Below are positions 6,901 to 57,554 of a DNA stretch of 64,000 nt, piece after piece. Every line of letters starts with the position of its first letter. The first letter of the stretch is position 1. The stretch is taken from contig NC_043026.1 in the NCBI RefSeq assembly GCF_006345805.1, forward strand, positions 12,007,579 to 12,071,578, read 5' to 3'. Both the position numbers and the translations under genes were made by a program. Below the pieces are notes generated by a model, which was not told the DNA's origin, did no database searches, and worked only from the letters and a program-made list of their open reading frames with translations. Origin of the DNA: Octopus sinensis (taxonomy: Eukaryota).

Positions 6901-6932
6901 CAGATGGTCGTGATATGTGCTAAAAATAACAG

Positions 6933-26120: not shown

Positions 26121-27320
26121 ATGCACAAACGTACTCACACGGGAGAGAAGCCATATCGCTGTGATATCTGTGGTGAATCATTCTCCCAGTCTGGTGTTTT
26201 ACAGAAACACAAACGTATCCATACAGGTGAGAAGCCATATCAGTGTAATATCTGTGGTAAATCATTTTCTCAAAGTGGTGGCTTAACTAAGCACACACGT
26301 ACTCATACGGGAGAAAAACCATATCGCTGTGATATCTGTGGTAAATCATTCACTGTATCTGCTCACGTAACTAAACACAAACGCATTCATACAGGAGAGA
26401 AGCCATATCAGTGTGATATTTGTGGCAAAACATTCTCTGGAAGTAGTGACTTAACCGCTCATATGCGCATTCATACAGGTGAAAAACCATATCACTGTGA
26501 TATCTGTGGTAACTCATTCACTGTATCTACTCACTTAACTAAACACAAACGCATTCATACAGGAGAGAAGCCATATCAGTGTGATATTTGTGGCAAAACA
26601 TTCTCTGGAAGTAGTGACTTAACTGCTCATATGCGCATTCATACAGGTGAAAAACCATACTGCTGTTATATCTGTGGTAAATCATTCCCTATAAGTAGTC
26701 ACTTAGCTGAACATAAACGTATTCACACTGGAGAGAAACCATATCGGTGTGATGTCTGTGATAAATCATTCTCTCAGAGTAGTGATTTAAAAGTACACAA
26801 ACGCATTCATACAGGAGAGAAACCGTTTCACTGTATTATCTGTAATAAATCATTCTCTCAAAGGCATCATTTAACTGAACATAAAGACGTTCATACTGGA
26901 GAAAAAACATACCATTGTGATATCTGTGGCAGATCATTCTTTCAAAATTGTAGCTTACATAGACACAGACGTATTCATACAGGAGAGAGGCTATGCTACT
27001 GTGATATCTGTGGTAAATCATTCATTCAGAATAGTGAATTAGCTAATCACAAGCGTGTTCATACAGGAGAGAAATTATATCTCTGTGATACTTGTGGCAA
27101 AACATTCTCTCAGTTTAGTCAGTTAACTATACACAAACGGGTTCACACAGGAGAGAAGCCGTATCATTGTGATATCTGCAATAAATCGTTCTCTCTTCAT
27201 CATCACTTAATTAGACACAAACGTATTCATACAGGAGAAAAACCTTATCTCTGTGATGTCTGTGGTAAATCATTCTCTCATTTAAATACCTTAACCTCTC
27301 ACAAACATATAACACCATAG
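26121..27320 (+). CDS. Poly-C2H2 zinc-finger protein: 14 fingers from Met 26121, 17 counting the in-frame upstream fingers (25896-26120)
   Basis: 399-aa ORF. The same frame is open back to 25896 and encodes three more fingers. An in-frame TAA at 25893-25895 follows ATG 25887, so gene integrity is uncertain. Confidence 0.8.
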
Positions 27321-29642: not shown

Positions 29643-31358
29643 GAGTGGCTGTGTGGTAAGTAGCTTGCTAACCAACCACATGGTTCTGGGTTCAGTCCCA
29701 CTGCGTGGCATCTTGGGCAATTGTCTTCTACTATAGCCTCGGGCCGACCAAAGCCTTGTGAGTGGATTTGGTAGACGCAAACTGAAAGAAGCCTGTCGTA
29801 TATATGTATATATATATATATATAGGAGTGGCTGTGTGGTAAGTAGCTTGTTTACCAACCACATGGTTCTGGGTTCAGTACCACTGCGTGGCACCTTGGG
29901 CAAGTGTCTTCTACTATAGCCTCGGGCCGACCAAAGCCTTGTGAGTGGATTTGGTAGACGGAAACTGAAAGAAGCCTGTCGTATATATGTATATATATAT
30001 ATATATATAGGAGTGGCTGTGTGGTAAGTAGCTTGTTTACCAACCACATGGTTCCGGGTTCAGTCCCACTGCGTGGCATCTTGGGCAAGTGTCTTCTGCT
30101 ACAGCTCCGGGCCAACCAATGCCTTGTGAGTGGATTTGGTAGACGGAAACTGAAAGAAGCCTGTCGTATATATGTATATATATATATATATATATAGGAG
30201 TGGCTGTGTGGTAAGTAGCTTGTTTACCAACCACATGGTTCCGGGTTCAGTCCCACTGCGTGGCATCTTGGGCAAGTGTCTTCTACTATAGCCTCGGGCC
30301 GACCAATGCCTTGTGAGTGGATTTGGTAGACGGAAACTGAAAGAAGCCTGTCGTATATATGTATATAAATAGGCATAGGAGTGGCTGTGTGGTAAGTAGC
30401 TTGCTAACCAACCACATGGTTCTGGGTTCAGTCCCACTGCGTGGCACCTTGGGCAAGTGTCTTCTGCTATAGCCCCGGGCCGATCAATGCCTTGTGAGTG
30501 GATTTGGTAGACGGAAACTGAAAGAAGCCTGTCGTATATATGTATATAAATAGGCATAGGAGTGGCTGTGTGGTAAGTAGCTTGCTAACCAACCACATGG
30601 TTCTGGGTTCAGTCCCACTGCGTGGCACCTTGGGCAAGTGTCTTCTGCTATAGCCCCGGGCCGACCAATGCCTTGTGAGTGGATTTGGTAGACGCAAACT
30701 GAAAGAAGCCTGTCGTATATATGTATATATATATATATATAGGAGTGGCTGTGTGGTAAGTAGCTTGTTTACCAACCACATGGTTCCGGGTTCAGTCCCA
30801 CTGCGTGGCACCTTGGGCAAGTGTCTTCTACTATAGCCTCGGGCCGACCAAAGCCTTGTGAGTGGATTTGGTAGACGCAAACTGAAAGAAGCCTGTCGTA
30901 TATATGTATATATATATATATAGGAGTGGCTGTGTGGTAAGTAGCTTGTTTACCAACCACATGGTTCTGGGTTCAGTACCACTGCGTGGCATCTTGGGCA
31001 AGTGTCTTCTGCTACAGCTCCGGGCCAACCAATGCCTTGTGAGTGGATTTGGTAGACGGAAACTGAAAAAACCCCGTCGTATATCATCATCATCATCATC
31101 ATCGTTTAGTGTCCGTTTTCCATGCTAGCATGGGTTGGACGGTTCAACTGGGGTCTGTGAAGCCAGAAGGCTTCATCAGGCCCAGTCAAATCTGGCAGTG
31201 TTTCTACGGCTGGATGCCCTTCCTAACGCCAACCACTCCGTGAGTGTAGTGGGTGCTTTTTACGTGCCACCCGCACTGGTGCCAGACAGAGCTGGCAAAC
31301 GGCCACGAATGGATGGTGCCTTTTATGTGCCACCAGCACGAGGGCCAGGTGAGGCTGG

Positions 31359-33108: not shown

Positions 33109-33147
<39 letters not shown>

Positions 33148-33316
33148 CACACACACAACTATACACCAACATTCATATATATAAGAAGTGAAGAATGTAG
33201 GGAAAAAACAATATTAGTCTACATAATGTGACGTAGATTCAGTTTCCAGCCAATTCTGACCACAAACAGATATTTCCAACAAAAACAACAACAAAATGGA
33301 GTAGTTATGAAAATGT

Positions 33317-36300
33317 TTATCTTTCATAATGTAAGAAACAATAAGATTGAGATCCTGAAACAGGTCCAAAAATCATGATAAAATTGGCCGAAACATCAAA
33401 ACCAAGAACTGTGTGGATTTCACTATCATCAGTGCTGAGGAATAACTGTTGTTCACCATCTCTAGCTATTTGGTATATATTGTCATACTTATCTGTTATA
33501 TACATATATTCACCATGTGTTGATAGATGAATTCTCTCATCATATAGATTCAATCTTATTTCTAAACTCCAGACCAAACCTTCTCTGTACCAATGCACAA
33601 CAGCATATTTCCACCTCTCTTTCACAACAATAATAATATCTTCGCTTGATGTTACACAAATTTTCTTCAGTTCAGTTCCTCGAGACCATATTTCATGACT
33701 GTATTCACATGTTTCATCAAGGATGTTAACTACATCGACATAATAGAATTTCCAGCCAGATCTTTTATCTAAAGTATAACCACCACACACAAGTTGATTG
33801 TTGTTCTTTTTATAAATCATTTCATAATCTTTTGTAATGTTGATGGTTTTTAAACAGGAGAGATCTCTTTTGAAGAACATCAGTTGTTTATTTTCTTGGA
33901 AGAGGACTATGAAACAGTCATCTGTCCACCGACATATATCCTGAGCATGTTTATCCAGTACAGTATGATGAAATAATTCACCTGTTGTGTTGGCTACAAT
34001 GAGAGTAGGGCTTTGTATGATAACAGCAAAATTGTCAGGTAACATAATTAATTTGGTGAACCTATCACGATTATAATCTAGTTCAATACCTGTAGGGGTG
34101 GAAAGAGGAAACATTGCTGTTCTATATGGCATTCTCTTCACTAATATTTCATTGCTTCCTAACGTAGTCTCTGCAATGTAATTACCACATCTCACCTTTA
34201 ATCTACCTTTATCGATTATTTTACGTGATTTTTCCCCCTCATCTCCTTTGCTACGTTTCAATGTATTAATTGATTCATTACTGAATATTTCATTGTTCAT
34301 ATAAGGTGTAATGGGAGGGAAATGAAGACCAGAGTCAAGCTTTAATGACATGCATTCCAGAATGTTCAATTGGTCACCATCAATCTCTACGGTATAATAT
34401 TCAGTCAAGTTAATATGTACACACCAGTAAGTGTTTTCTGCTTTTCTACATATTACTCCAAAAGGTATTTCACTTTGCCAGACTTTATAGTTTACCAAAT
34501 CTTGTTGCTTCAGTCGAAATATTTCTTTTCTGTTCGGAATTGTAACCATTATATCTCTTTCTCCTGTATAACACACACCACCAACTAAAGTTCCAAGATC
34601 TCTGTAACATACCAGCTCCCCGTCTCTATCAGATGTTTTAACACCGCCAATATTGGCTTTTTCACATACAACCGTCTGTCCATCAACAGAGATATCAAGA
34701 TCTTTTACTTCAACAGGATACAGGTCTGTTTGCAACTGACAGATGGAGAATCTCTCTCGATTAAGTTTAAACGAACCTTCGACATACAAACGGTTTTCGG
34801 TGTTTCCAACAAACCTTGGGCCATTACAGTTTATACTGGAGAAATTTATTCCACGTTTGTAATGTCTTTTACTTAAAAATAATCTCTTGTATTTACCCGT
34901 CTGCAACAAGCACATAATACGACTACGTTGAAAGTCATTTTCTTTATCCCACCATCCGTAAATGTACAAATAAGCATCGTCAATTGTCAAATAGTTTGCC
35001 TTGACATACATGTGATGCTGTACAACACGTAAAAGTTCACCATTGCGCTTAACGAAAACGATATAATGATCACTGATGAATATGATGACATCCTCAGCAG
35101 TAACTGCAATACCGCATATCTCGTCGTCATAATTTCTACCGAATATTTTAGTAATGTCTATTTCGATTTTATTCATCTCACACACAGTCGACTGTATTTC
35201 ATCAATCTTAATAATAAGCAAATATTTCTCTCCATCTGTATTACCACAACATACAAGTAGATTGTCAGACAAGGAAGCAATACAAGAATACTCATTTTCT
35301 GCCTGGTAAGTTACCAGAGACAATGGAAATTCTACTTTTAACGTTAACAGTTGGTATTCATCACCAGTTGTAATAACCAGTGTGTTTGACTGCCAGCGAC
35401 ACATATATCTAGGGAAAATATCTAATTTTATCGAGTCAAGAAGTTGACCGTCAAATGTTAATATCTTAATGTTCGAATTTACATTGTCGTAGAGTATAAT
35501 CAGGTTGTTATCAGTAATAACTGAACAACCAGTAATGACCGTGTATTCGTTGTCTCCAACGGATCGAGGGGTTGAAATATGTCGGGCTTTATCAGAAACT
35601 GTATGGTCCTGCATATGCAATTTAGAGGACAACATTTCACTGACGCAGATGTTTCTAGAAAATACATCTACCAGGTCGATGTGCATGTTAAGCTGATTAT
35701 TGGTAATGTAATCTCTCACTACTAGGTTATAGTCATTTATAGCAAACATACTAGTGTTGTCTATCAGATAAACAAATATGTTATCAATATATCCACCATA
35801 GAGATTGGGTGGAGGTCTGATATGAGGCAGTAAAAGGGTGGGGACCAACTTACTACCACTATTATTACTATTACAACTGCTACTGTGGCTGCTGCTGCTA
35901 CTACTACAACTACTACTACTACTATTCCTCCTCCTCCTCTTCTTACCAGTAACAGGTTTGTAGAGAAATACCTTTTTTTTAGTAACAACCAGTACACTTT
36001 GTGTTTCGTTTTCTATCACTAATGACTTTATAAAAGGTATATTGATTGTAGAAGTTATTTCACCTTGGTTGTGGCTTTGAATCGATACAATGTCTAAACG
36101 AGAAGGTTTGTCACAAGCACAGGCAATGTGACCTTCACCGAGCTTACGTACCGATGTATAAGGCTGGCTTAATGATAGAGTTCTAATTCTTTTTGATAGA
36201 TTTCCGATAACCCATAGTTGTTTCTCTAGGGGTAATGTGACACCTATGTGATTACAATCCCATCGGCATATATCTGTAGCTGTAGATGGCAGAGATAATC

Positions 36301-38470
36301 TAGACACAATGTCTCCATCTTTAGAAACATATAACAAGTGGTCATTATCAAAGTTGGACAACACAAACTGCCCACTTGGGAGCCAGCACATTTTGGCAAT
36401 GAGTATTTTGTTATTCTTATTTTCTTCAAGCCGAATATCTAGATTTTTGATGTAAGGGTTTTTGATCTGTATATTACAACTGGACCAGTCAGAGTATTTA
36501 TAAAGAAGCATTCTGCTGTGTATAACATCCACTACGTATACAGTTCCTTGGAAAACATCAATGTGAAAGTAAGGAGTTGAAGGCAGTTTCAATTTCCATT
36601 TACTTTCTCCAGTTATGTTGTAGCATACTATCAGAGACTCTCTCCTGAAGACAACATAGAAGTAAAATTTGTCAGTGTAGATATGATGAGGGCTGGAGTA
36701 AAAATCAAGGCGTTTCACAAAAAGTTCTTCACCAGAGCTTGTATAAAACACCAGCGTATTTTCTCTCTTGTCTGCTACTACAAAATTGATTGGAGTTGCT
36801 GCAATGATGACATCTTCATGTTTAAGTGAAATTTTGTCTACGATGTCAATTTTGTTCTCTGTAATCAATACGATATGTGCCTCTACTTCAGTGCTCAGAG
36901 CCAAGTACTTATTTGATACCATATGACATATTTGAATGTAATCAGCATCGATGTCTATAAAGTGACCTTCAGTTAGTTCAGGGCATGCAATATACTGAAG
37001 TTTCCTATCTTCTCCATACAGAACAAGAAATCTGTTTGAATCAGTTCGGCAGATGGCAGAAGGTTGGTATTTAGACGTTAATGTACTTCTGCAAATGACT
37101 TGCCCATTATCACTAAGTAATTTAGCTTCTTGACTCCTATATAGAAGTAATATAGAAGAGGCTGACACAGGCAGAATATTTTGAATCTCACAGGGGTCAT
37201 CAATATGAATTTGGTTTTTCACAGTTGGTGTATGAAATTGTTGGCAATAAGTCATGCTTGGCCAAAAGTTATTATTTGTCTTAAGAGTATATGCAATGCC
37301 TGAGAAATCAAGCAGGAAAATAGCATTTGTGACACAACAAATATATCGAGCTTTTATCGCAATTTTTCTCTGTGACACTCCACCCTTAGATGAAATCCTG
37401 TAGATGACATTTCCTTGCAGAACGTAAAAATAATTGTGAAAAACTGAGATACTAGTTGGAATATCTGTTGAGTGTGTATATACTTGAAATAACTGTCTGC
37501 CATCAAGACTGCAGCAGACAACTTTATTTATATTAGCAAATGCTAATAAGAGGTGATTCTGAGGTCCTACTATGATACTTGTAGGCCTCTCTTCTAGGGC
37601 AGTTATTTTTTCAACTGTATCATTGGCCCAGTCCACAAGATAGATCGTCTTGCCAAACAGTTCCAGCCCTACAAATTTACAATGTTGCAAATAAGAAATC
37701 TTATCGAAACCATAATCCAGAGATATCATTTCCCAACTTGAGGGGTTAAAAATGATTAGTTTTTGCCTAAATGGCAATGTGGCCAGAACAGTCTCTTCAC
37801 CGATTCTTGTAATGTCTATGATGGGTGACGGACAGTGGACTGTGTTACTTCTACCATCAGTTGTGTTACAACGTAGAGTCATCAAATATGGTGAGTAGGT
37901 CACTATTCCATGATAGATTGTGGCAATATTTGATATTATATTTGGGGTGTCTTCATCAGATTCCTCAAACTCCAATTTTCGTGGCACAACTTCAGAAGAA
38001 GAAACGGAATGGAATTTTGTGACTGGCTTTGGTAATGTAATGGCCTTATGCTTGTAGGGATTGCTGTTAGTGTAAATGTCAAACAGCCGTTCACGAAACC
38101 AAGGAAGATTCTGAAGAATCATGTCGTTGTTTTGTTTAGTATATTTCCGAAAGATTTTCATTTCACGCGCGACATTTCTTAAAAACTGACGTTTGTCTAA
38201 CCCCATGAGTTCTATGTCGTTGCCCTTCTCATTCACAAGGTCCACAAACATTTGGATGTGGTTACCTTTCATTATTGTTTGACCACATGTGATTAAGTAA
38301 AAAATTTTCTGCATTTCCTGTTCTTCCTCAGCCTTCTTCCTGCTCTTTTCATTATATACTTTGGCAATAATTGACACTTCGTTATAATTTTTAGCACTGG
38401 ATAGTAAATCATTATTTGATTTGGCGGGATTGTCAAGAGCCAGAATTGGGTTTTCTTCAACCTTCGACAT
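33317..38470 (-). CDS. Uncharacterised 1717-aa protein in one uninterrupted ORF: helical N-terminal region plus six tandem predicted beta-propeller (NHL-like) modules
   Basis: A 5154-bp stop-free frame in AT-rich DNA cannot be chance. The recurring module motif D/N-G-x-L/V...P/A-x-D/A-I-C-R-W...V-T-L-P starts at aa ~178, 427, 690, 977, 1254 and 1470. The fold assignment is an inference. Confidence 0.88.
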   Translation of the reverse strand: MSKVEENPILALDNPAKSNNDLLSSAKNYNEVSIIAKVYNEKSRKKAEEEQEMQKIFYLITCGQTIMKGNHIQMFVDLVNEKGNDIELMGLDKRQFLRNVAREMKIFRKYTKQNNDMILQNLPWFRERLFDIYTNSNPYKHKAITLPKPVTKFHSVSSSEVVPRKLEFEESDEDTPNIISNIATIYHGIVTYSPYLMTLRCNTTDGRSNTVHCPSPIIDITRIGEETVLATLPFRQKLIIFNPSSWEMISLDYGFDKISYLQHCKFVGLELFGKTIYLVDWANDTVEKITALEERPTSIIVGPQNHLLLAFANINKVVCCSLDGRQLFQVYTHSTDIPTSISVFHNYFYVLQGNVIYRISSKGGVSQRKIAIKARYICCVTNAIFLLDFSGIAYTLKTNNNFWPSMTYCQQFHTPTVKNQIHIDDPCEIQNILPVSASSILLLYRSQEAKLLSDNGQVICRSTLTSKYQPSAICRTDSNRFLVLYGEDRKLQYIACPELTEGHFIDIDADYIQICHMVSNKYLALSTEVEAHIVLITENKIDIVDKISLKHEDVIIAATPINFVVADKRENTLVFYTSSGEELFVKRLDFYSSPHHIYTDKFYFYVVFRRESLIVCYNITGESKWKLKLPSTPYFHIDVFQGTVYVVDVIHSRMLLYKYSDWSSCNIQIKNPYIKNLDIRLEENKNNKILIAKMCWLPSGQFVLSNFDNDHLLYVSKDGDIVSRLSLPSTATDICRWDCNHIGVTLPLEKQLWVIGNLSKRIRTLSLSQPYTSVRKLGEGHIACACDKPSRLDIVSIQSHNQGEITSTINIPFIKSLVIENETQSVLVVTKKKVFLYKPVTGKKRRRRNSSSSSCSSSSSSHSSSCNSNNSGSKLVPTLLLPHIRPPPNLYGGYIDNIFVYLIDNTSMFAINDYNLVVRDYITNNQLNMHIDLVDVFSRNICVSEMLSSKLHMQDHTVSDKARHISTPRSVGDNEYTVITGCSVITDNNLIILYDNVNSNIKILTFDGQLLDSIKLDIFPRYMCRWQSNTLVITTGDEYQLLTLKVEFPLSLVTYQAENEYSCIASLSDNLLVCCGNTDGEKYLLIIKIDEIQSTVCEMNKIEIDITKIFGRNYDDEICGIAVTAEDVIIFISDHYIVFVKRNGELLRVVQHHMYVKANYLTIDDAYLYIYGWWDKENDFQRSRIMCLLQTGKYKRLFLSKRHYKRGINFSSINCNGPRFVGNTENRLYVEGSFKLNRERFSICQLQTDLYPVEVKDLDISVDGQTVVCEKANIGGVKTSDRDGELVCYRDLGTLVGGVCYTGERDIMVTIPNRKEIFRLKQQDLVNYKVWQSEIPFGVICRKAENTYWCVHINLTEYYTVEIDGDQLNILECMSLKLDSGLHFPPITPYMNNEIFSNESINTLKRSKGDEGEKSRKIIDKGRLKVRCGNYIAETTLGSNEILVKRMPYRTAMFPLSTPTGIELDYNRDRFTKLIMLPDNFAVIIQSPTLIVANTTGELFHHTVLDKHAQDICRWTDDCFIVLFQENKQLMFFKRDLSCLKTINITKDYEMIYKKNNNQLVCGGYTLDKRSGWKFYYVDVVNILDETCEYSHEIWSRGTELKKICVTSSEDIIIVVKERWKYAVVHWYREGLVWSLEIRLNLYDERIHLSTHGEYMYITDKYDNIYQIARDGEQQLFLSTDDSEIHTVLGFDVSANFIMIFGPVSGSQSYCFLHYER

Positions 38471-38934
38471 TTTCTCAACTTTGATGTCTTAACTCTTCCT
38501 TATATATACTTATGCATGTGCGTATGTGTGTGCTTGCAAGCGTTTATTGGTGGCTGCCTTAAAACCATTAAATCCAAGAGGTCCGTGAGATTGAGATGTC
38601 TTTTGTGTCTCAGTTTTCCTTTGGAGAGAAATTTGCTTACTTCTCAATTTACCGATTTCACACCAGAACTGAAATGAAATTTAAAATAAAATTAAAGCAT
38701 TTATTAGTTTTTTGGGTTTTTTTTAAACCATAGGTGTAGGTGTGTCAGTGTGATAAGAAATTAGCTTCCCGAAAATAACCTTCAAAGGTAATAATTATTA
38801 AAATTATAAATTAGGGTATCACCATGCTGAAAATAGCAGCCATGATCTGACTCTAAAACCACCTTAATTGTCCATATCGCAACACGGAGAGAAAACAAAG
38901 AGACAAGATGAAACTAGGAAAAAATTACTGGATA

Positions 38935-38993
38935 ATTCTAGATCCCGGATTTCTGACTTTGCATTTAGGAATGCTTTGCCTCATCAGTAGAAT
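38935..38993 (-). ncRNA. Candidate type I hammerhead ribozyme (Penelope-type, minimal stem III)
   Basis: Minus strand: ATTCTA-CTGATGA-GGC AAA GCATT CCTA AATGC AAA GTC-A-GAAA-TCCGGGA-TC-TAGAAT. Stem I is a perfect 6 bp and both core boxes are intact. There is one extra A before GAAA. Confidence 0.65.
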
Positions 38994-39054
38994 ACACACA
39001 GAAGAGAAACATAAATACATATATATATAAGCACAACATATGAATTCTTACATA

Positions 39055-39855
39055 TACAACCTGAAGAAAATTCTAACTGGGCCCCACCTGCAAGGTCTTA
39101 TGCTGTTTGTCTTGATATGAGGTCACCATGGTTGTTATGTATGTGCCTGATGTACTCTTATCAGAAGGGTAGTAATGACAGGTATATTAGGTTTCCTATA
39201 TTTTATCCTAGGGTCACTTTGAAGCCATGTACTGCTCTCTCACTCAATGTCTTACAAACTTTAATAATAATAATGCCCTGACGCAGTACCAGGCAGTGGC
39301 TCTCATGGCTTCTGATCTTAACTGATTGGAAGTGTTATCATGTACGTTGTTTTGTCTTGGTATAAAAGATGGGCTACAGCAAATATTCTGCTCAATACCA
39401 CAGATTTGCTTGTCAGTTGTTTGACCTTAACCAGTTGAGCATGTCCCTTAGTGGCTGACGATATGTGCATCTCTGATCACGAGCAGAAGTAGTGGGGGAG
39501 CATCATAGCCATGTGTTGAGAGGAATTCTTTGGGGTTTGAATAATTCACCTCTGGAAACATGGGCGGTTCTTTCAACATCCTTAAACAACCCTTATTCAG
39601 GGACCTTTTGAGCGGGATGGGCTACTCAACCTGAAGAAAATTCTAACTGGGCCCCACCTGCAAGGTCATGTGCTATTTATCTTGATATGAGATCACCATG
39701 TCGTGCACATATGGTTGTGATGCATGTGCCTGGTGTACCCTTATCAGACGGGTAGTCATGATGGGTATATTGGGCTTCGTATATTTTACCCCAGTGTCAC
39801 TTTGATGGCATGAACTGCTCTCTCACTCAATAATAATAATAATAATAATGATAAT
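39055..39855 (+). mobile_element. Retroelement 3' region with (AAT)n tail: partial copy (39055-39272) followed by a longer copy
   Basis: AACCTGAAGAAAATTCTAACTGGGCCCCACCTGCAAGGTC...CTGCTCTCTCACTCAAT occurs twice, each followed by (AAT)n. A further fragment lies at ~49915-49975. Confidence 0.65.
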
Positions 39856-39862
39856 AATAATA

Positions 39863-40953
39863 ATGTATATTTCTTTACTACCTACAAGGGGCTAAACACA
39901 GAGGAGACAAACAAGGACAGACAAAGGATGAAAACAAAGTCGACCATGGCGATATTTGAACTCAGAACGTAACGGCAGACGAAATACCTATTTCTTTACT
40001 ACCCACAAGGGGCTAAACACAGAGAGGACAAACAAGGACAGACAAACGGATTAAGTCGATTGCATCGACCCCAGTGCGTAACTGGTACTTATTTTATCGA
40101 ACCCGGAAGGATGAAAGCAAAGTCGACCATGGCGATATTTGAACTCAGAACGTAACGGCAGACGAAATACCTATTTCTTTACTACCCACAAGGGGCTAAA
40201 CACAGAGAGGACAAACAAGGACAGACAAACGGATTAAGTCGATTGCATCGACCCCCAGTGCGTAACTGGTACTTATTTTATCGAACCCGGAAGGATGAAA
40301 GCAAAGTCGACCTCGGCGATATTTGAACTCAGAACGTAACGGCAGACGTAATACCTATTTCTTTACTACCCACAAGGGGCTAAACATAGAGGGGACAAAC
40401 AAGGACAGACATAGGTATTAAGTCGATTGCATCGACCCCAGTGCGTAACTGGTACTTAATTTATCGAACCCGGAAGGATGAAAGCAAAGTCGACCTCGGC
40501 GATATTTGAACTCAGAACGTAACAGCAGACGTAATACCTATTTCTTTACTACCCACAAGGGGCTAAACATAGAGAGGACAAACAAGGACAGACAAACGGA
40601 TTAAGTCAATTGCATCGACCCCAGTGCGTAACTGGTACTTATTTTATCGAACCCGGAAGGATGAAAGCAAAGTCGACCTTGGCGATATTTGAACTTAGAA
40701 CGTAACGGCAGACGTAATACCTATTTCTTTACTACCCACAAGGGGCTAAACATAGAGGGGACAAACAAGGACAGACAAAGGTATTAAGTCGATTGCATCA
40801 ACCCCAGTGCGTAACTGGTACTTAATTTATCGACCCCGAAAGGATGAAAAGCAAAGTCGACCTCGGCGGAATTTGAACTCACAACGTAACGGCTGACGAA
40901 ATACTGCTAAGCATTTCGCCCGACATGCTAACGCTTTTGTCAGCTAGCCGCCT
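39863..40953 (-). mobile_element. SINE B array, about six units of ~177-185 bp, head only at the right end
   Basis: Recurrent GAAATACC/GTAATACC-TATTTCTTTACTACCCACAAGGGGC junctions. Private variants (GGCGATATTTGAAC, CCCGGAAGG) are shared among units. Confidence 0.88.
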
Positions 40954-41639
40954 TTTTGTTGCATAGAAATCGCTGTCGGAAAATAAAGCAAAATTCAAAT
41001 TAAAGTTGTATGTGTAACTCTAATAAATACTCAACATTTTAAATATGATAGTGCTTATTTGTTAATTAAAATAATTATAACGATACTTACTAGAATCGAT
41101 GTGTGGATTTAGATTTCAAACTGAGAAGTCTTTAATTTTCAGCAACCGCATTCGGAGTTTGGACCAGTTGTGCATTTGTAATGAAACTACTGTTTGCAGA
41201 CAGACTATTTATAGAGCAGGATGGAATATATATACTTCTAGCCATCAGCTTTAGAATTACATGCGTGCGTGCGTTTTGTATATTCGTAAGTAGTGTGTTA
41301 CTTAAGCTCTCAGTTGCTTGTGGTTCTTATCGCTTAGATATGATTCATATTACTTAGATATGTGACCTGAGGCCATTTACAAACCAGTTACTTACTGCAT
41401 GCAACTATATATGGGCTTGCGAAGGAGTGGACGTGCGTAAATTTCTTTGGTAGAGCAAATAATTCTTGGAAATTATGCCTAGAGGGGTGGATCAAAAGAA
41501 AATGGGACGACATTTCGTTGTCAGAAAGGCCATTTTAAAAACTGATTTATTGAGGTGTTTGCCCTTAAATGGAACAAAGAAGTTTTAATTTCCATTCTTA
41601 TTTGCAGGTGCTGCTGACAATGCGTCGGATCTGCAAGAG

Positions 41640-42126
41640 AGGGGGGAGGGCGAGAGGGCGAGAGAGAGAGAGAGAGAGGATCAGTCAAACACACATTCTC
41701 TCTCATGCATACATACCCGCATACATACATGCATATATATAGACATACACACAGGCACACGAATAAACAGTCATACAAACACACACACACACACACAGAG
41801 GAACGTACAGAGATACACATACAGTCACCTACACGCACATAAACCGTCGAAGTAGTAGACAGACAGACACACGAATGATGGACACACACGCACACACATA
41901 GACAGTCGGAGAGACAGACACATGCACACACAGATAAACGGTTGAAAGTAAACTTTGGGCTTATTCTTTGTACGCCTAATACCTTCTTTACAAAAGGAAA
42001 ATTGTTTATTTCTATCTTTCTCTTTGTAATGAAGTAATGCTTTTATTAATCAATTATAATAAGAGATTAAAAGACTCACACGAAGTGGTCGCAATGAATT
42101 GACACGTATGCATCTTTGTTACTCAA

Positions 42127-42205
<79 letters not shown>
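41640..42205. repeat. Compound (GA)n/(CA)n/(CT)n/(TA)n microsatellite region
   Basis: Directly visible simple repeats. Confidence 0.9.
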
Positions 42206-42210
<5 letters not shown>

Positions 42211-42489
42211 AATTAGAGACAAAACCACTATTACGCAAATCAAACAAAGAAAGACTTAATCCAATACATAAATTAATTTATATAATTTAGAAATTTAACA
42301 ATTATTAATATCCACTACGATCGTTTCATGTCTTCTTTTCATCACAACTTTGAGTAGTAGACATTCTTCAGGTGGTTTCAAATAATTGTCTCTAATTTAT
42401 ATAATATAATATTTTACTATAAATTGGATTCAATCCTAAATCTGATTTTTCCCTGTAAGTTTGGATTTATTCCCTAATATTTATTATTA

Positions 42490-42526
<37 letters not shown>

Positions 42527-42565
42527 TCTTTGTTACTCAATTATATATATATATCTATATATATA

Positions 42566-43432
42566 TCAGTTTCTTTTTGCCGAACCGCTAAGTAACGGGG
42601 ACGTAAACACACTAGCATCGGTTGTCAAGCAATGCTAGGGCGACAAACACACATACATATATATATATATATATAAATATTACATTATATAAAAGGGCTT
42701 AGTAAAATAAATTACTTTGCCGCATACTGAACTCATTAGAAATAGCAGCTAAAAAAACTTTTCTAGAACTATTTCCAATACTTAAAGAAAACCTCTCTCA
42801 TATAGTGCTTGCTCAATTCAACCCACGAAAGTATGTGGGTAGAGACATTAAAAAAATCAAATGCAAAGGTTATTTGAGAACGTACGTTTCAAGATTAGTC
42901 AACTCGACATTTCTATCATCAGCTCAGAACTCCCTGGTTTGGATTTGAAAACACTGAAAGTGGGAGCATACCCTTTCGGCTTGTTATCGCTTCTGAAGAT
43001 CCGCTCGAAACTAACAGTGTCAGCAAATTCAAATATGCAAGCGAAGAATTTCTGCTCTCCCCTTTTCTTTAAGTATTGGAAATAGTTCTAGAAAAGTTTT
43101 TTTAGCTGCTATTTCTAATGAGTTCAGTATGCGGCAAAGTAATTTATTTTACTAAGCCCTTTTATATAATGTAATAATTTGAATTCGCCTTAAATGGTCC
43201 CTTTGCATACTGAATACTTGGTGAAATTGATTAATTAATTAATTTTACCCTCAATTGTTAAAATTATATATATAAATATATACGACAGGCTTCTTTCAGA
43301 TTCCGTCTAACAAATCCACTCACAAGGCATTGGTCAGCCCGGGGCTATAGCAGAAGACACCTGCCCAAGATGCCACGCAGTGGGACTGAACCCGGAACCA
43401 TGTGGTTGGTTAGCAAGCTACTTACCACACAG
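42566..43432 (-). mobile_element. SINE A interrupted in its internal microsatellite by a TIR element
   Basis: 3'-half piece at 42566-42660 and 5' half at 43281-43432. Confidence 0.75.
42678..43176. mobile_element. ~500-bp MITE with ~110-bp terminal inverted repeats
   Basis: TATTACATTATATAAAAGGGCTTAGTAAAATAAATTACTTTGCCGCATACTGAACTCATTAG...CTTAAAGAAA is mirrored at ~43065-43176. Confidence 0.85.
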
Positions 43433-43959
43433 CAATATATATTGTTATATTTCGGAATGGTCATTATGCCAATTTAGCCAATAAAAAACACGCACTATAT
43501 ATTTGGTTTTATTTTGCTTCAGTGTTATCTATTTTTTACATTAATCTTAATCTTATTTCGGCCAGAGTTCGTTCGTCACACTCCTGTGACCGCATCAGTG
43601 GTCCTTTGTTTTCTTCTTTCTTATTTGTGTGTCTCTCCTTACTAACCGTCAGCCATTTTGTATTTCTATTGTATGTCTTCATTTGCGCATGCTTATATCT
43701 CTATGTGCGTCTATGTTTATTTAGTGTGTGTATGTGGGGGGATGCCTGTAATATTTGTATCTTCTGTTTATATATGTTCATGTAATTTGTATTTTGTATT
43801 TTGTTTTTGTTGTTTTTGTTTATTCTTATTTTGTTCATGTGTTTACATCCACTTATTATTATCATTACATATGCTTGTATGTATGTATGTATAACAACAA
43901 TACTAGTAATAACAATAATAAATCGAATCGAAATATATATATATATATATATATATATA

Positions 43960-44356
43960 TCTTTATATATAAAAGTAAGGTTGTGTGTCTGTCTCCTACG
44001 ATTTAGAGTCCTAACTACTCCCACATTTTGCAGTGCAGTTTAACCAAAACCGGGTATCTTATAGTCGTGATTCATATCGAGCCCTTCTGGGTATTAGCGT
44101 GCGTCTACGATGAGTCTACGATTTTTAAAATAATTTACCATCATATTTTTCCATTTTAATGCATTTTTTAGCTTTTATATAGGGGAAGTAACTCTCTAAA
44201 AATATCTACGATGTGTCAACGATTTAAAAAAAATTTACCATAATTTCTTTTCCATTTTTAATGCATTTTTTTTGCTATTTTTTGGCTATAACTCTCTAAA
44301 AATGCTTATATAGTTATTTCCCTTACAATCCGAGCAACGCCGGGCGATACTGCTAG
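43960..44356 (+). mobile_element. Non-autonomous Helitron (A|TC ... hairpin CTAG|T)
   Basis: Begins TCTTTATATATAAAAG and ends CCGAGCAACGCCGGGCGATACTGCTAG, between A and T. Confidence 0.85.
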
Positions 44357-44376
44357 TATATATATATATATATATA

Positions 44377-44770
44377 CTAGCAGTATCGCCCGGCGTTGCT
44401 CGGGTTGTAAGGGAAATAACTATATAAGCATTTTTAGAGAGTTATAGCCAAAAAATAGCAAAAAAAATGCATTAAAAATGGAAAAGAAATTATGGTAAAC
44501 TTTTTTTAAATCGTTGACACATCGTAGATATTTTTAGAGAGTTACTTCCCTTATATAAAAGCGAAAAAATGCATTAAAATGGAAAAATATGATGGTAAAT
44601 TTTTTTTAAATCGTAGACTCATCGTAGACGCGCGCTAATACCCAGAAGGGCTCGATATGAATCACGACTATAAGATACCCGCTTTTGGTTAAACTGCACC
44701 GCAAAATGTGGGAGTAATTACGAATGTAAATCGAAGGGGACAGACACACAACTTCACTCTTATATAAAGA
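44377..44770 (-). mobile_element. Non-autonomous Helitron of the same family, tail-to-tail with the previous copy
   Basis: CTAG at 44377-44380 and TC start at 44770 on the minus strand. Confidence 0.85.
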
Positions 44771-45573
44771 TGCTTTTTTTTTCAGTCATAGAGTTAGATT
44801 TATGAAGGTCTTCAGTAGAAAATCCTTCGAATTCTGACTCGCTGCTTGATATAATGAAATTCGTATCCATTTTTTGTCAGAATTACAAATTTTGAAAACA
44901 CAATAGGAACAAATTTCGGAAAAAAATCTCCCATAATTCACGGAATTAAAATTACACTTCGATTTTTGTACAAAACTGTATTTGAAGTGTTTACAAAGTA
45001 TAATACGTGTTTTCACGAATGTACTAAAGAGATTTACTCTGATATTCTCATTTAAATATGAATAGGTAAATTCGGGCGGTTTGGTAACGAAAGGGTTTAT
45101 ATAAGTGTCGTCTGTTTATACATAAACACTGTTTCATAGTTTCAGTTTAGTCTTCCTCAAATCACTGTTGCTAATTTACTCTCTTCCAAGAACATTTTCA
45201 CTCACTGTTATCTGTTAGCTTCCCATACATTTTACTCATGTATCTATCAGCGTGATAGACAGAAACAAATATTACATTTACTTTCATTTTATTCGTTGCC
45301 CACTGTGTGTGTGCGTTTGCGTGTGGTGTAAACCAGACTAAGAAAAGCATTTGACACACACACCAGAATGTGAGTTTTCTGTAAATTTTGCTTAATTGGA
45401 GTTTAAATTTTAAAAACTGGACCTGGCATGACGCGATGCATTGTACTCTTAAAACTGCTAGGTAAATTGTAATTGAAGAAATCCTATATTGTAGATTTGT
45501 ATAACTCCCAAAGGGAGGCAGATAAAATCTGCCTTTTATAATAAGAGATATATATATAGTTATTTATTTCTAT

Positions 45574-46240
45574 TTGTTTATTTATCTGTGTATTTATTAT
45601 GTTTTCGGGATCCTCTATCGTCATATGTTGTGGTGTGCGCTAGTGCTCCATTCTAGTTTTCTATTCAGGCTAGGTTTATTTTCTATTATGTGTGTAGCTT
45701 CTGTAATTTGTCTAATTGTTGCATCTGTTCTATGTGTGGACAATATTCTAATTTCTATGTTATTGATTGATCCCCCGTGTTCCTGTTCGGCGTGTTGGTA
45801 CAGAATCGATGAGCTTTTACCTTCCTTGAGTTGTCTCCAATGTACATTTACCCGCTCTCCTATGCTTCTTGCTGTTTCCCCTACGTATGTCGTTGTCTTG
45901 TTACTGCATCGTCCCTCTATACATCTTATACTATAGACTACATTTCTGGCTTTACAGTTTGTTTGTGGGCTAAATCTACATACAGTACAGTACTTATCCG
46001 TACAGGGGATGCTACTAAAAGGATAGGTTCTACCAATTATAGATTTGATAGGGTTGCCTGGCTTTTCAACAACCTTAATTCTTAGCTTAAGTTTGTCTAG
46101 GGTCCTTCTAAAGCGGTACGCCAGTTCACCTCCAGGGGTGGTGTCAACGAACATGACATTCTGGTATTTATGGCTATCATACCAAGAGTTGGCCTTCCCT
46201 ATTTTCTTTTTTGTCCTTTCTATAGTGTTCCATATATATT
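45574..46240 (-). mobile_element. 5'-truncated Penelope-like retroelement: GIY-YIG endonuclease region
   Basis: ORF 45621-46154 has FVDTTPGGEL, CxxxxCxxC, NCKARNVVYSIRC...C...YVGETARSIGERVNVH and RQITEATHI...LNRKLEW. The frame extends upstream as WNTIERTKKKIGKANSWY. No RT core remains. Confidence 0.85.
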
Positions 46241-46436
46241 CAGCAAAAACAATTAAGATTCAAGTGAATTCCACATAGACACAGGCTCTAGGATGTCTGG
46301 AAAACATGTATGTGATTTAGCTGATGAATACTGGACATTTGTATTTGCTGCAATACTTACAGCTTTAAATAAAATTGTTCTTGGTATGAAACAATTGTAC
46401 TAGGCTACTAATCCATTCTTGTTGCTTTCTTCTTGG

Positions 46437-46479
<43 letters not shown>

Positions 46480-46480
<1 letters not shown>

Positions 46481-46948
46481 TAGCAGTATCGCCCGGTGTT
46501 GCTTGGGTTTGTTTCGACCCGCTGGAATTGGAATTTTTGAAAAGTAAAAATTTTGCATTTTGTACCTTGTTATTCTCTTCAAGTGAACATTTTTGTGGTT
46601 GAAATACACCGAAAAGTGGCGACACTGCAGTGAAAAAATCGTAAAAAAAAAGGGATTTTCATAGAAAAAAGCACCTTTTTGATGTAAATAATTTTTGGTG
46701 TTAACATGGTCCGATTTGAATTTTATCTTCTACGGAAGGAAGAGCAACCCTTCTATCATACTTTCAATTTTGGTCAACTTGCGCCACAGGGTCTCAGAGG
46801 AAATTGAAAAAACTTTATATGCCATGACCCAATCGAATCTACTTGTAAAAATCGTAGGTAAATTCCAATTGAAGAAATTCTATATTGTAGAATTGTATTA
46901 AAAAGGAACATGGGAACAGGCAGAGAAAATCTGCCTTTTATCATAAGA
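46480..46948 (-). mobile_element. Non-autonomous Helitron, third family
   Basis: CTAGCAGTATCGCCCGG 3' terminus after (TA)n. The 5' end near ...TTTTATCATAAGA is shared with a fragment at ~45455-45549. Confidence 0.7.
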
Positions 46949-46990
46949 TAAGAAGAGATAAGAGATCATAAGAGAAGATATCATAAGAAA

Positions 46991-48113
46991 CTAGCAGAAT
47001 TGCCCGGCGTTGCTCGGGGCTGAATTGCTTGAAAGTACAGTTAATGATTGCACTGAATTATGATGATTATTCAGGCAAATATTGATATAAGTTTACGGCG
47101 AATGAATGTATTTGTAAGTATATAGAAAGCCGCGTAAAGGTAGAATGGTGTAAGAATTGAATGCGAGGTTGCCTTGAAAAGAGCCATGTTATTGTTCTCA
47201 TAATTGTAAGAATTTGATAGTCGTGGAAGGCAATGTAAAACGTTCGCAGGTGAATAGGGTCTCTTCATTTTCCACTAACGGCAGCGGATGTGCTGTTACA
47301 AAACTACATTTCATCATTTTCGAACACGTTAGTATTCATTTACATAGGACTCTCTTTTATGATGGCATTTACATTTTTATGCATTTCATGACATTAATTC
47401 ACACTTAACCAACACCTGTCCTTCACTCACCTCTATTTCTATCCATTCATCATCAAACCACCAGCCTCATCTTCTATATCCAACGTACATGACACATCTA
47501 CACTCTCACTGTTAAAGTTTACATAAGCGACAACAAGATCGCAACATACACTTTGGAAACTAAGCAACAGATCATTTTATACAACAACAAATTTAATCAT
47601 AACGCCCATCAATGAAAACATCTCCACCACTGTGTTGTGATTCATCTATTCAGCACCACTACAGTCTTGCCGGTCTGACATATGGTGAGTAGATGCTATT
47701 GTTCTATATTTTATAAATTACCCATATTTACTTACCCATGCTTCATTCCCCTCTTGCCTACATAGGGCATCCATTCTCTTTTAACACAGCATGAAGTTTT
47801 GTAACAGCACATCCGCTGCCGTTCGTGGAAAACGAAGAGACCCTATTCACCTGCGAACGTTTTACACCGCCTTCCACGACTAGCAAATTCTTACAATTAT
47901 GAGAACAATAACATGGCTCTTTTCAAGGCAACCTCGCATTCAATTCTTACACCATTCTACGAGGGGGTAGGAACCCCTTTACACGGCTTTTTATACATTC
48001 ATTCGCCGTAAACTTATATCAATATTTGCCTGAATAATCATCATAATTCAGTGCAATCATTAACAGTACTTTCAAGCAATTCAGCCCCGAGCATCGCCGG
48101 GCAATTCTGCTAG
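46991..48113. mobile_element. 1.1-kb foldback whose two ~320-bp inverted arms both end in a Helitron 3' terminus
   Basis: CTAGCAGAATTGCCCGGCGTTGCTCGGGGC at 46991 and GCCCCGAGCATCGCCGGGCAATTCTGCTAG ending 48113. Arms are ~46991-47310 and ~47790-48113. Confidence 0.8.
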
Positions 48114-48245
48114 TATATATATATATATATGTCATTTTCCATTCTTCCTGAGTGTCAAACTAATACACCTACTTGTTATTCCTACACCTGTCTTCGTCTT
48201 TTTTTTTCTATAAATTTGAACCACACACACACATATATATATATA

Positions 48246-49797
48246 TACTCTTTTACTTGTTTCAGTCATTTGACTGCGGCCATGCTAGAGCACCGCCTTT
48301 AGTCGAGCAAATCGACCCCAGGACTTATTCTTTGTAAGCCCAGTACTTATCCTATCGGTCTCTTTTGCCGAACCGCTAAGTGACGGGGACGTAAACACAC
48401 CAGCATCGGTTGTCAAGCAATGCTAGGGGGACAAACCCAGACACACACATATATACGACGGGCTTCTTTCAGTTTACGTCGACCAAATCCACTCACAAGG
48501 GTTTAGTCGGCCCAAGGCTATAGTAGAAGATACTTACCCAAGATGCCACGCAGTGGGACTGAACCCAGAACCTTGTGGGTGGTAAGCAAGCTACTTACCA
48601 CTCCTGCGCCTAAATATATATGCATCATATATACATCTTATTTTAAGATGAAATATTTCGTCTTACAGTTTTGTATTTATTCGTAACATAACAACTTTAC
48701 TGTGATATTGTTTACTAATATCTGAGAAAACATTTCTCAAAATTTTGTTGACCATCTCAAATATATCAACATTACTTTACTTCACCATCATCGTTTAGCG
48801 TCCGTTTTCCATGCTAGCATGGGTTGGACGGTTCTACTGGGGTCTGTGAAGCCAGAAGGCTTCATCAGGCCCAGTCAAATCTGGCAGTGTTTCTACGGCT
48901 GGATGCCCTTCCTAACGCCAACCACTCCGTGAGTGTAGTGGGTGCTTTTTACGTGCCACCCGCACAGGTGCCAGACAGAGCTGGCAAACGGCCACGAACG
49001 GATGGTGCTTTTTACGTGCCACCGGCACGAGGCCAGTCGGGGCGGCGCTGGCAACGGTCGCGAAATGGAAGGTTCTCTTACATGCCACCGGCACTGGTAA
49101 CACATCTGCAATTTCCATTGATCGATTTCGATTCTGACCCGGAAATTTGTTACGTGAAATATATATGAGTAGATGCATGGTTATACATAACATTACAAAT
49201 ATTTTGGGATCTCATCAACGTAGAGTTCTCTTTCTCTTTTTACTTGTTTCAGTCATTTTGACTGCGACCATGCTGGAGCACCGCCTTTAATCGGAGCAAC
49301 TCAACCCCGGGACTTATTCTTTGTAAGCCCAGTACTTATTCTATTGGTCTCTTTTGCCGAACCGCTAAGTGACGGGGACATAAACACACCAGCATCGGCT
49401 GTCAGGCAATGCTAGGGGAACAAACACAGACACACAAACATACAAGCACATACATATATACGACAGGCTTCTTTCAGTTTCCGTCTACCAAATCCACTCA
49501 CAAGGCTTTGGTCGGCCCGGGGCTATAGTAGAAGACACTTGCCCAAGGTGCCACGCAGTGGGACTGAACCTGGAACCATGTGGTTGGTAAGCAAGCTACT
49601 TACCACACAGCCACTCCTGCGCCTGCGTATACATATATACGACGGGCTTCTTTCAGTTTCTGTCTACCAAATCCACTCACAAGGCTTTGGTCGGCCCGAG
49701 GCTATAGTAGAAGACACTTGCCCAAGGTGCCACGCAGTGGGACTGAACCCGGAACCATGTGGTTGGTAAGCAAGCTACTTACCACACAGCCACTCCT
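48246..49797 (-). mobile_element. SINE A (48246-48612), family D (48786-49140) and SINE A with a duplicated 5' half (49228-49797)
   Basis: Direct family matches. Confidence 0.8.
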
Positions 49798-50069
49798 GAA
49801 AATATAGTAATAATGTTATCACATTAATATCTCTTCTTTCTTGGGTGAATATAGTTATGGTTATACAAGTCATTTATTGCATTGGATGAATTTTCACAAA
49901 CAGCATGTATCCTGCTAAAAGCAGTGGGGGAGCATCCATAGCCATGTGTTGAGAGGAATTCTTTGGGGTTTGAATATGCCACACAAGAAGGTACTAAAAG
50001 GGCAGCTGCCTATAAAACAATGCTTCAAAAAGGGAAGCATGATGTGTCATAGTAAGTGTTATGATTTCA

Positions 50070-50665: not shown

Positions 50666-50756
50666 GTCCACAAAGCTATCATATGATTTAGCAGGGAAAA
50701 CAGTCTTCAATTGGGTTGTCGTCATAGTATTGCAAAGCATTTTGATAATGATTCCG

Positions 50757-51800
<1,044 letters not shown>

Positions 51801-57372: not shown

Positions 57373-57554
57373 GAGATATTAATAACTTCACCACACACAT
57401 TCAACTCCATAATAATCCAAAGTACCTTGGATCGCAGAACAACCTGCTGTGCTTACCTTGGATCATAGGGCGACCTGCTGTGCTTGAGGAGACCTATTGA
57501 GTCAAGTACATCAACATCAAAATAAAAAAAATCAAATAGAAATTGTAGTTGTGA

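Follow-up and report, generated by a model that had tools for sequence, protein, structure and literature searches.

The locus and its gene

The window analysed here is a stretch of 64,000 nt from Octopus sinensis, and the element in question is a large gene on its minus strand (33317..38470) that encodes a protein of 1717 aa, made up of a helical N-terminal region and six tandem modules that are best read as beta-propellers of the NHL type. The window corresponds to O. sinensis chromosome CM016888.1 around 12.03–12.06 Mb, with the gene at 12.03 Mb. A preliminary description of the window had reported a single intronless, stop-free reading frame of this length without giving a strand. The open reading frame (ORF) is uninterrupted from ATG to stop, with 1717 codons plus the stop codon, and an in-frame TAA lies 21 nt 5' of the ATG. 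At 36% GC the stop probability is 0.073 per codon (about one stop per 14 codons), which gives a chance probability of about 3.5e-57 for 1717 open codons; the remaining five frames across the same interval contain 82–202 stops each. The gene and its flanks are:

33317..38470, minus strand: complete single-exon coding sequence (CDS), 1717 codons and stop, stop codon at 33317-33319 (ORF; O. bimaculoides orthologue, locus L001, 10001-15139; dN/dS 0.40)
38471..38770, minus strand: 5' flank, collinear with the O. bimaculoides orthologue; candidate splice acceptor (tttcatttcag) near 38670, found by eye (nucleotide collinearity)
33131..33316, minus strand: 3' flank, collinear with the orthologue; putative 3' untranslated region (nucleotide collinearity)

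The putative splice acceptor makes an upstream non-coding exon possible. Another gene model, with a 552-aa product, covers the whole 25-kb locus L003 (the window region) on the same strand, and the propeller gene therefore appears to lie within an intron of a longer gene, which is probably of the zinc-finger type.

Conservation of the reading frame

The orthologue in O. bimaculoides (P0002) is collinear, 1712 aa long and 85.7% identical at the aa level, and at the nucleotide level the two loci are collinear, with 90.4% identity, over the ORF together with 300 nt before the ATG and 186 nt after the stop codon. A zinc-finger gene downstream of the gene is common to the two species. Between the two coding sequences there are 436 substitutions and five indels (3, 6, 6, 9, and 21 nt), all of which are multiples of three. 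When 436 random substitutions were placed on the CDS in a neutral simulation that kept the observed transition/transversion ratio, about 14 stops arose on average and the frame stayed open in 0 of 2000 trials. The comparison between orthologues suggested in the preliminary description gave, by the Nei-Gojobori method, a dS of 0.177, a dN of 0.071 and a dN/dS ratio (omega) of 0.40, with the frame intact in O. bimaculoides. Omega varies along the CDS from 0.24–0.41 in the first 1000 codons to about 0.5 in codons 1200–1600 and about 1.2 in the last ~110 codons. The outcome of the neutral trials, the in-frame indels and the dN/dS ratio together therefore indicate that the frame is maintained by selection under moderate constraint, and the ORF is an intact, selectively maintained, single-exon protein-coding gene.

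It could be argued that the ORF is a non-functional relic, i.e., a young pseudogene or an over-predicted frame yet to decay, as its identity to the orthologue is similar to that of flanking non-coding blocks and an omega of 0.40 is fairly relaxed. Such a relic is extremely unlikely, as no simulated frame remained open over 436 substitutions and every indel is in frame; moreover, intact frames of 1650–1900 codons are kept in Argonauta and in many paralogues that are just 31–50% identical.

Protein anatomy and predicted fold

The product is a soluble protein of about 190 kDa in which the helical N-terminal region is followed by a short conserved junction and the six modules. In agreement with the preliminary description, hydropathy analysis revealed no transmembrane segment (best 19-residue Kyte-Doolittle window, KD19, 1.53) and a charged N-terminus that is not signal-like, and we infer a cytosolic location. 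The six short peptides by which the modules had first been marked are present at aa 217, 470, 731, 1020, 1296, and 1509. AlphaFold2 was run with an alignment of paralogues on two halves of the protein (aa 1–860 and 861–1717), a split that cuts module 3 at aa 860. Confidence is given as the predicted local distance difference test (pLDDT), and the parts of the protein are:

38048..38386, minus strand: N-terminal helical region, aa 29-141; four predicted helices, pLDDT 41-67; 24% identity between paralogues, the fastest-diverging part; no homologue outside the family (AlphaFold2, paralogue alignment)
37931..38047, minus strand: junction, aa 142-180; predicted disordered (pLDDT 25-28), with conserved K142, K148, K152, F153, S171, I179, and S180 (AlphaFold2, alignment)
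37271..37930, minus strand: module 1, aa 181-400; 21 strands (about 5 blades and one strand), pLDDT 75-88; motif IIDITRIGEETVLATLP at aa 217 (AlphaFold2, Foldseek, hhalign NHL profile 92.5%)
36491..37228, minus strand: module 2, aa 415-660; 24 strands (6 blades), pLDDT 78-89; motif at aa 470 (AlphaFold2, Foldseek, NHL profile 71%, modules 2 and 6 76.7%)
35960..36418, minus strand: module 3, aa 685-837; covers the first ~3.5 blades; of all modules the most conserved among paralogues (66.6%); motif ATDICRWDCNHIGVTLP at aa 731; nearest of the modules to B-box+NHL proteins (AlphaFold2, hhalign 96.6%, E 4.9e-10)
35819..35959, minus strand: Ser-rich low-complexity linker, aa 838-884; starts KKRRRR; disordered in the models (sequence, AlphaFold2)
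35576..35818, minus strand: conserved segment, aa 885-965 (64.7% between paralogues); two short helices, and four strands of low confidence; may close module 3 as its last blade(s) (AlphaFold2, alignment)
34766..35575, minus strand: module 4, aa 966-1235; ~23 strands, pLDDT mostly 70-88; motif at aa 1020; NHL-like blade IILYDNVNSNIKILTFDGQLL; sub-threshold TRIM71 NHL match (AlphaFold2, Foldseek, NHL profile 92% over 227 columns)
34091..34765, minus strand: module 5 and linker, aa 1236-1460; motif at aa 1296; homology of the opening two blades to module 4 (85.6%); pLDDT <50; aa 1236-1375 64.8% conserved between paralogues; NHL profile 68% (AlphaFold2, hhalign)
33320..34090, minus strand: module 6, aa 1461-1717; ~23 strands, pLDDT 80-93; motif at aa 1509; consistently acidic (isoelectric point, pI, ~5); last ~110 codons dN/dS ~1.2 (AlphaFold2, Foldseek, hhalign modules 4 and 6 96.6%)

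The first half (mean pLDDT 67.5) is modelled as four helices of modest confidence at aa 29–141 and disorder to aa 177, followed by all-beta modules of short strands at 181–397 (21 strands), 420–657 (24 strands) and 691–837 (14 strands). In the second half (mean pLDDT 60.6) four low-confidence strands at about 900–929 precede a confident module at 961–1231 (~23 strands), a low-confidence region at 1234–1470 and a last module at 1470–1717 (~23 strands, pLDDT 80–93). The beta modules other than module 5 have a pLDDT of 70–93. A six-bladed propeller has four antiparallel strands in each blade of about 40–45 aa, and the models give 24 strands for module 2, about 23 each for modules 4 and 6, and 21 for module 1, while module 3 is split by the construct boundary, with about 3.5 blades and one low-confidence blade past the Ser-rich linker, and module 5 has a pLDDT below 50. 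The propeller fold proposed for all six modules is thus confidently predicted for modules 1, 2, 4, and 6, and for modules 3 and 5 these models give no confident, complete propeller.

A crude heptad score is high solely around aa 116–156, and no homology of the helices at aa 29–141 to a TRIM coiled coil was detected. The KKRRRR at the start of the Ser-rich linker (35819-35959, minus strand) is RRRRR in O. bimaculoides, and the linker differs in length and composition among paralogues; it could be a candidate nuclear localisation signal or a phospho-regulated hinge.

Foldseek searches of the PDB returned tandem beta-propeller proteins as top matches for both halves (E down to 7e-21 and 3e-14), among them IFT-A, UTP21, WD40 proteins of the axonemal doublet microtubule, AIP1, DDB1, LRP4, LRP2, and Apaf-1. 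As IFT-A, axonemal, UTP21, AIP1, and DDB1 propellers are the best of these, and as propeller models of WDR90 and CFAP43 give sub-threshold matches in a few paralogues, the protein might be conceived as a structural scaffold of cilia or the cytoskeleton, akin to the WD40/EML/IFT proteins, with propellers as rigid blocks of a large assembly. The matches are, however, only 8–12% identical with TM-scores of 0.1–0.3, which points to a generic fold, the low scores being due to differing relative domain orientations. Sequence profiles indicate NHL and not WD40, and the family is confined to octopods, multi-copy and about 50% divergent (see below), unlike housekeeping scaffolds, which as a rule are widely conserved and present in one copy. 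A scaffold of this kind is therefore decidedly improbable.

Homology of the modules and their relation to NHL propellers

Self-BLASTP of the 1717-aa protein gave no internal match, and the repeats are visible at the profile level only. The modules were compared with hhalign as blocks of a 20-paralogue alignment. The strongest pairs were modules 4 and 6 (96.6%, E 7e-10, 175 columns), 3 and 6 (95.5%), and 4 and 5 (85.6%), so that module 6 is linked to both module 3 and module 4 at 95–97%; weaker values were found for modules 2 and 6 (76.7%), 3 and 4 (76.2%), and 1 and 3 (37%). Module 1 is joined to the others via an external NHL profile (92.5%). On this profile evidence the six divergent, recurring modules that had been described are homologous to one another, well beyond chance.

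The family to which they belong is not evident from single sequences. Searches of Pfam, NCBIfam, and PDB with the 1717-aa protein gave nothing above threshold, and the Pfam NHL repeat (PF01436) at E<=1 matched neither the window protein nor any of the 20 paralogues; the deep paralogue P0028 reaches 18.5 bits with a gathering cut-off of 20. Other propeller families matched below threshold in the 20 paralogues, i.e., DUF4934 in seven, WDR90 in five, and ANAPC4_WD40 and WD40_CFAP43 in one each, and WD40 repeat models were otherwise without match. A precomputed PF23381 tag on one family member (P0012) was not reproduced by hmmscan.

An exhaustive HMMER scan with a profile of aa 1–1200 against 1.84 billion representative proteins gave 28 matches, of which 18 were looked up by source. 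Sixteen of these came from O. sinensis, O. vulgaris, O. bimaculoides, and Argonauta hians, except for a short ENA fragment (P0042). The other two, the sole non-octopod matches among the 18, are both to module 3 and both lead to B-box proteins, in line with the relationship to mollusc B-box/TRIM propellers that had been suggested. One (P0045, E 2.7e-4) is KAK3588083.1 of the freshwater mussel Potamilus streckersoni, with a RING, a B-box and a C-terminal propeller; the other is a eukaryotic protein (P0044, E 3.4e-5) with B-boxes and an NHL repeat, encoded at 6001-7326 of loci L004/L005 (ENA ERZ25073280 / ERZ25073293). The latter is one of 79 or more intronless paralogues, many of them more than 80% identical, with precomputed Pfam B-box (PF22586, PF00643) and NHL (PF01436) assignments, and this family is a massive, very recent expansion. 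No repeats common to the loci of this family and Octopus were found. Against a profile of its propeller, hhalign gave 96.6% for module 3 (E 4.9e-10), 92.5% for module 1, and 92.0% for module 4 over 227 columns, i.e., the entire six-bladed domain, and lower values for module 2 (71%), module 5 (68%), and module 6 (31%). The N-terminal region scored 0.2% in this comparison and its profile 0.1–0.2% against B-box proteins, consistent with the earlier proposal of an unrecognised N-terminal domain, as no relatives outside the family are detectable.

A PDB sequence search with the family profile gave sub-threshold matches only, 8 of 13 being NHL domains of TRIM71, TRIM2, and TRIM3 that match at the classic blade motif (IAVyDeeNknIKIlTFDGQLL against its TRIM71 counterpart; sub-threshold, E 0.17–1.9). 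The modules are thus, by profile comparison, NHL-type propellers related to those of B-box/TRIM-like proteins; by Pfam scoring the octopus modules are not recognisable as NHL repeats.

No RING or B-box was found in scans of the window protein, the 20 paralogues, the longer Argonauta (P0025) and O. vulgaris proteins or P0028, and there is no RING- or B-box-like ORF upstream of the gene among the ORFs in 38471-50700. Domain searches likewise revealed no recognisable catalytic domain. Propellers of this fold may also be enzymes, and weak matches of the window protein to Mala_s_1-like and of P0044 to SGL, families that belong to the same six-bladed fold clan, would be in keeping with SGL/lactonase-, strictosidine-synthase- or PAL-like modules instead of binding modules. 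All such matches are below curated cut-offs, no metal-binding or catalytic motif is apparent, the invariant columns being mostly hydrophobic, Gly, Pro, and Asp structural positions, and the closest profile relatives are the non-catalytic NHL domains of the TRIM type, so that an enzymatic role is very improbable.

An octopod gene family

The gene does not stand alone. By the database proteins, O. sinensis has at least 13 paralogous loci, mostly intronless, O. vulgaris and O. bimaculoides have comparable numbers, and some of the copies are truncated or frameshifted. Word-indexed searches for homologues, run both with the protein sequence and with a profile of the family, gave 22 proteins, all from Octopus, and in these and the exhaustive scan the family was found only in octopods (O. 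sinensis, O. vulgaris, O. bimaculoides, and Argonauta hians). In a neighbour-joining tree there is a deep clade (P0028/P0048) at about 31% identity, which all three Octopus species have and which lies on another, large chromosome, a pair of Argonauta hians proteins at about 35% identity, and a radiation of at least 10 Octopus lineages at about 50% identity. Most of these lineages are older than the split between O. bimaculoides and O. sinensis, since P0002 is the one-to-one partner of the window gene. Argonauta (30–48% identity) and the deep paralogue can be aligned collinearly over every region, each of the six modules included, and the six-propeller layout therefore predates the divergence of Argonauta and Octopus; the internal duplications are old, as had been thought.

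Identity between paralogues is 24% in the N-terminal helical region, 60–67% in modules 2, 3, and 5 and in aa 885–965, and 47–55% in modules 1, 4, and 6. Each gene that was examined consists of one exon (P0004, 5406 nt; P0028, 4989 nt; Argonauta P0025, 5742 nt). Four copies lie on CM016888.1, at 9.81, 11.26, 12.03 (the window gene), and 13.32 Mb, loosely co-located and not in tandem. The one at 11.26 Mb (L008; 10001-15412) has an uninterrupted frame of 1804 codons; its database model (P0009) is 1691 aa long and apparently splices out about 340 nt of open frame. The one at 9.81 Mb (L009) is a full-length copy with one frameshift at locus nt ~12160–12290, either a pseudogene or an assembly error; it is annotated as a 764-aa protein (P0022), and the other ~1000 codons run on in a different frame. 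Several database models of the family are truncated, and these together with the frameshifted L009 indicate a birth-and-death pattern.

Two further observations concern database models. The locus of P0004 is overlapped on the opposite strand by a 1956-aa gene model. Residues 195–324 of P0037 (O. vulgaris CAJ1099278.1, 'E3 ubiquitin-protein ligase MIB2-like isoform X4') match the junction and the start of module 1 of the family (E 6e-43), which may be either a chimeric gene model or a captured fragment beside a MIB2-like gene.

A large, intronless, multi-copy ORF in repeat-rich DNA could also belong to a mobile element or an endogenised virus, a possibility that the preliminary description had itself raised for a transposon. 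Consistent with this are the 13 or more copies on several chromosomes, some frameshifted or truncated, and the SINE-like (short interspersed element-like) arrays and retroelement debris around the gene, which is itself nested inside another gene model. On the other hand the nucleotide similarity (67–73%) between the window and the paralogous locus L002 ends at the ORF, the other shared DNA being interspersed repeat, a repeat search found no terminal inverted or direct repeats bracketing the ORF, and Pfam searches found no transposase, reverse transcriptase, integrase, or capsid domains. The position is orthologous in O. bimaculoides, with the downstream zinc-finger gene common to both, and the closest relatives are cellular B-box+NHL proteins. 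A fold search of BFVD gave generic propellers only (<=14% identity), which argues against a viral origin. We therefore regard a mobile or viral ORF as very unlikely.

The surrounding window

The window has a GC content of 36–45% and contains C2H2 zinc-finger ORFs and SINE-like arrays. The gene had been said to be embedded in a zinc-finger cluster, and five long C2H2 ORFs are indeed present, each with 9–11 or more fingers (Pfam zf-C2H2, E 1e-67 to 1e-79):

3552-4886, minus strand: C2H2 zinc-finger ORF
6933-8384, minus strand: C2H2 zinc-finger ORF
15119-16147, minus strand: C2H2 zinc-finger ORF
26121-27320, plus strand: C2H2 zinc-finger ORF, syntenic with O. bimaculoides
50757-51800, minus strand: C2H2 zinc-finger ORF

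Tandem arrays of a 181–184-nt unit lie on either side of the propeller gene (30000-31196 and 39861-40956). The unit at 30–31 kb is an abundant interspersed (SINE-like) repeat, as it recurs at many sites in the window and at other Octopus loci. A 177-aa ORF at 45621-46154 (minus strand) contains a Cys-rich stretch followed by 'YVGETARSIGERVNVH' and has no Pfam match; it may resemble the GIY-YIG endonuclease of Penelope-like retroelements, a likeness that Pfam did not support. Three ORFs on the minus strand (12508-13104, 17281-17790, and 60309-60857) have similar C-terminal tails (e.g., '...RVAEAWNKLPASVV' and '...RVADLWNKLLDEVV') and no significant Pfam match, and they look like decayed ends of ORF2 of a long interspersed element (LINE). 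Overlapping ORFs at 57453-58637 (minus strand), 22-498 (plus strand) and 48824-49168 (plus strand) consist of a repeated unit of about 40 aa ('GAFYVPPAQVPGE.GSGHD.LVLFTC..HRCQG.LAVA') without Pfam match and are probably a translated tandem or interspersed repeat, not a gene.

Proposed origin and function

NHL propellers are non-catalytic binding modules; those of Brat and LIN-41/TRIM71 bind RNA on their top face, and those of TRIM2, TRIM3, and TRIM32 bind proteins. For a soluble chain of six NHL-type modules without a ligase head, a multivalent binding platform is the simplest reading. Most probably an intronless gene of the B-box+NHL type lost its zinc-binding head, its propeller was then duplicated internally, six-fold, and repeated copying of the entire gene followed, for the most part on a single small chromosome and with birth-and-death dynamics. 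The protein would then act as a non-enzymatic multivalent binding platform, in which each propeller may bind a protein or an RNA on its top face, in the manner of TRIM-NHL proteins but without ubiquitin-ligase output, and in which the variable helical head may provide self-association or contact with paralogue-specific partners. Taken as a whole, an octopod family of NHL propellers of TRIM-like origin that serves as a multivalent binding platform is rather likely; its structural and evolutionary description is very likely correct, and the mechanism as a sensor or platform is tentative.

Several points weigh against this reading. No module reaches the Pfam NHL gathering score, and modules 3 and 5 are without a confident closed-propeller model. 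At the nucleotide level the ORF is no more similar to its orthologue (90.4%) than nearby non-coding syntenic blocks are to theirs (89.5–91.1%), so that the constraint on it is modest. The omega above 1 at the C-terminus, which comes from one species pair and about 110 codons, does not amount to a test for positive selection. The proposed function is derived solely from domain type and evolutionary pattern. Finally, the absence of RING and B-box stands, as seen above, and their loss is a direction of change suggested by the nearest relatives; the alternative would be capture of the propeller by B-box proteins.

If the modules retained RNA as ligand, the protein could be a multivalent RNA-binding regulator whose six propellers tether or compact several RNAs, either host transcripts or viral or transposon RNA. 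The NHL-type ancestry of the modules, the basic character of modules 1 and 3 in nearly all paralogues (pI 8–9.3) and the basic KKRRRR/RRRRR cluster within the linker are all compatible with this. Modules 4–6 are, however, acidic in most paralogues, the per-module charge pattern is weak, and many NHL domains bind proteins instead; an RNA-binding regulator of this kind is unlikely.

Within the preferred reading of a multivalent binding platform, diversifying recognition (e.g., innate-immune or genome-defence sensing) fits better than a housekeeping scaffold because of the lineage restriction, the copy turnover with decaying copies, the 50% divergence of paralogues, the variable head, and the fast C-terminal module. 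In bivalves, B-box-containing orthogroups are among the expanded immune-associated families (PMC8382680). It is tempting to speculate that the proteins are octopod-specific cytosolic pattern-recognition or genome-defence receptors, in which a set of six diversifying NHL propellers would recognise a number of ligands simultaneously, perhaps nucleic acids, and a hypervariable helical head would couple to paralogue-specific effectors, TRIM-derived and without a ubiquitin ligase and co-expanding with the C2H2 arrays on the same small chromosome; in this specific form the proposal is a long shot.

Comparison with known systems

The system had been put forward as undescribed. None of the papers that could be searched describes the octopus family or mentions its gene symbols, nothing relevant came up on octopus NHL/TRIM expansions or on intronless propeller genes of cephalopods, and no named or published protein with six NHL-type propellers was found in the literature or among database names; the proteins themselves are already in public databases, every one named "uncharacterized protein LOC..." or "hypothetical". 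The architecture and the family are therefore best classed as new, and the NHL-type domain as already known. Cephalopod genomes are known for lineage-specific expansions, e.g., of C2H2 zinc fingers and protocadherins, and to these is added a large octopod-only family with six NHL-type propellers in one intronless chain. If the proteins are a recognition system they would represent a novel type of invertebrate sensor and offer a natural test case for multivalency in place of E3-ligase signalling; if they merely are scaffolds they are still a well-defined target for structural and expression work in octopus.

Several propellers per chain are also found in tandem-propeller scaffolds, i.e., DDB1 (3 propellers), the TAPE domain of EML, the WD40 pairs of IFT-A, UTP21, and the YWTD arrays of LRP4/5/6 and LRP2, but these use other repeat families (WD40, YWTD) and have no sequence relationship to the octopus protein. 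In the LRP family 4–8 six-bladed propellers in series can serve as multi-ligand receptors. LRPs are extracellular with EGF spacers, whereas the octopus protein has no signal peptide, transmembrane segment, or EGF domain.

The six-bladed propeller of the vertebrate and fly TRIM-NHL proteins (TRIM71/LIN-41, TRIM2, TRIM3, TRIM32, Brat) is a ligand-binding module for RNA or protein, and its NHL-type blade motif is shared by the octopus protein. The latter differs in having six propellers instead of one and in lacking RING, B-box, and filamin domains. As RING and B-box were tested and are absent, the octopus protein is no TRIM and should be without E3 ligase function.

Closest are the TRIM-like B-box+NHL proteins of molluscs and other invertebrates (e.g., P0045 and the P0044 family), whose propeller is homologous at the profile level (up to 96.6%, and over the full domain for module 4) and which have the blade-1/2 signature (hydrophobic-x-P-x-G-x-hydrophobic ... 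LP..x.DIC ... hydrophobic-TLP) in common with the octopus protein. Their genes are, like those of the octopus family, intronless and lineage-expanded. They are proteins of 400–470 aa with one propeller after one or two B-boxes, with or without a RING, whereas in the octopus protein the six propellers are preceded by an unrelated helical N-terminus and a zinc-binding head is absent; identity is only about 26–29% in the best module. The family may thus be an example of how a new giant protein arises by internal duplication of one domain of a TRIM-like ancestor, after what was probably a loss of the catalytic head.

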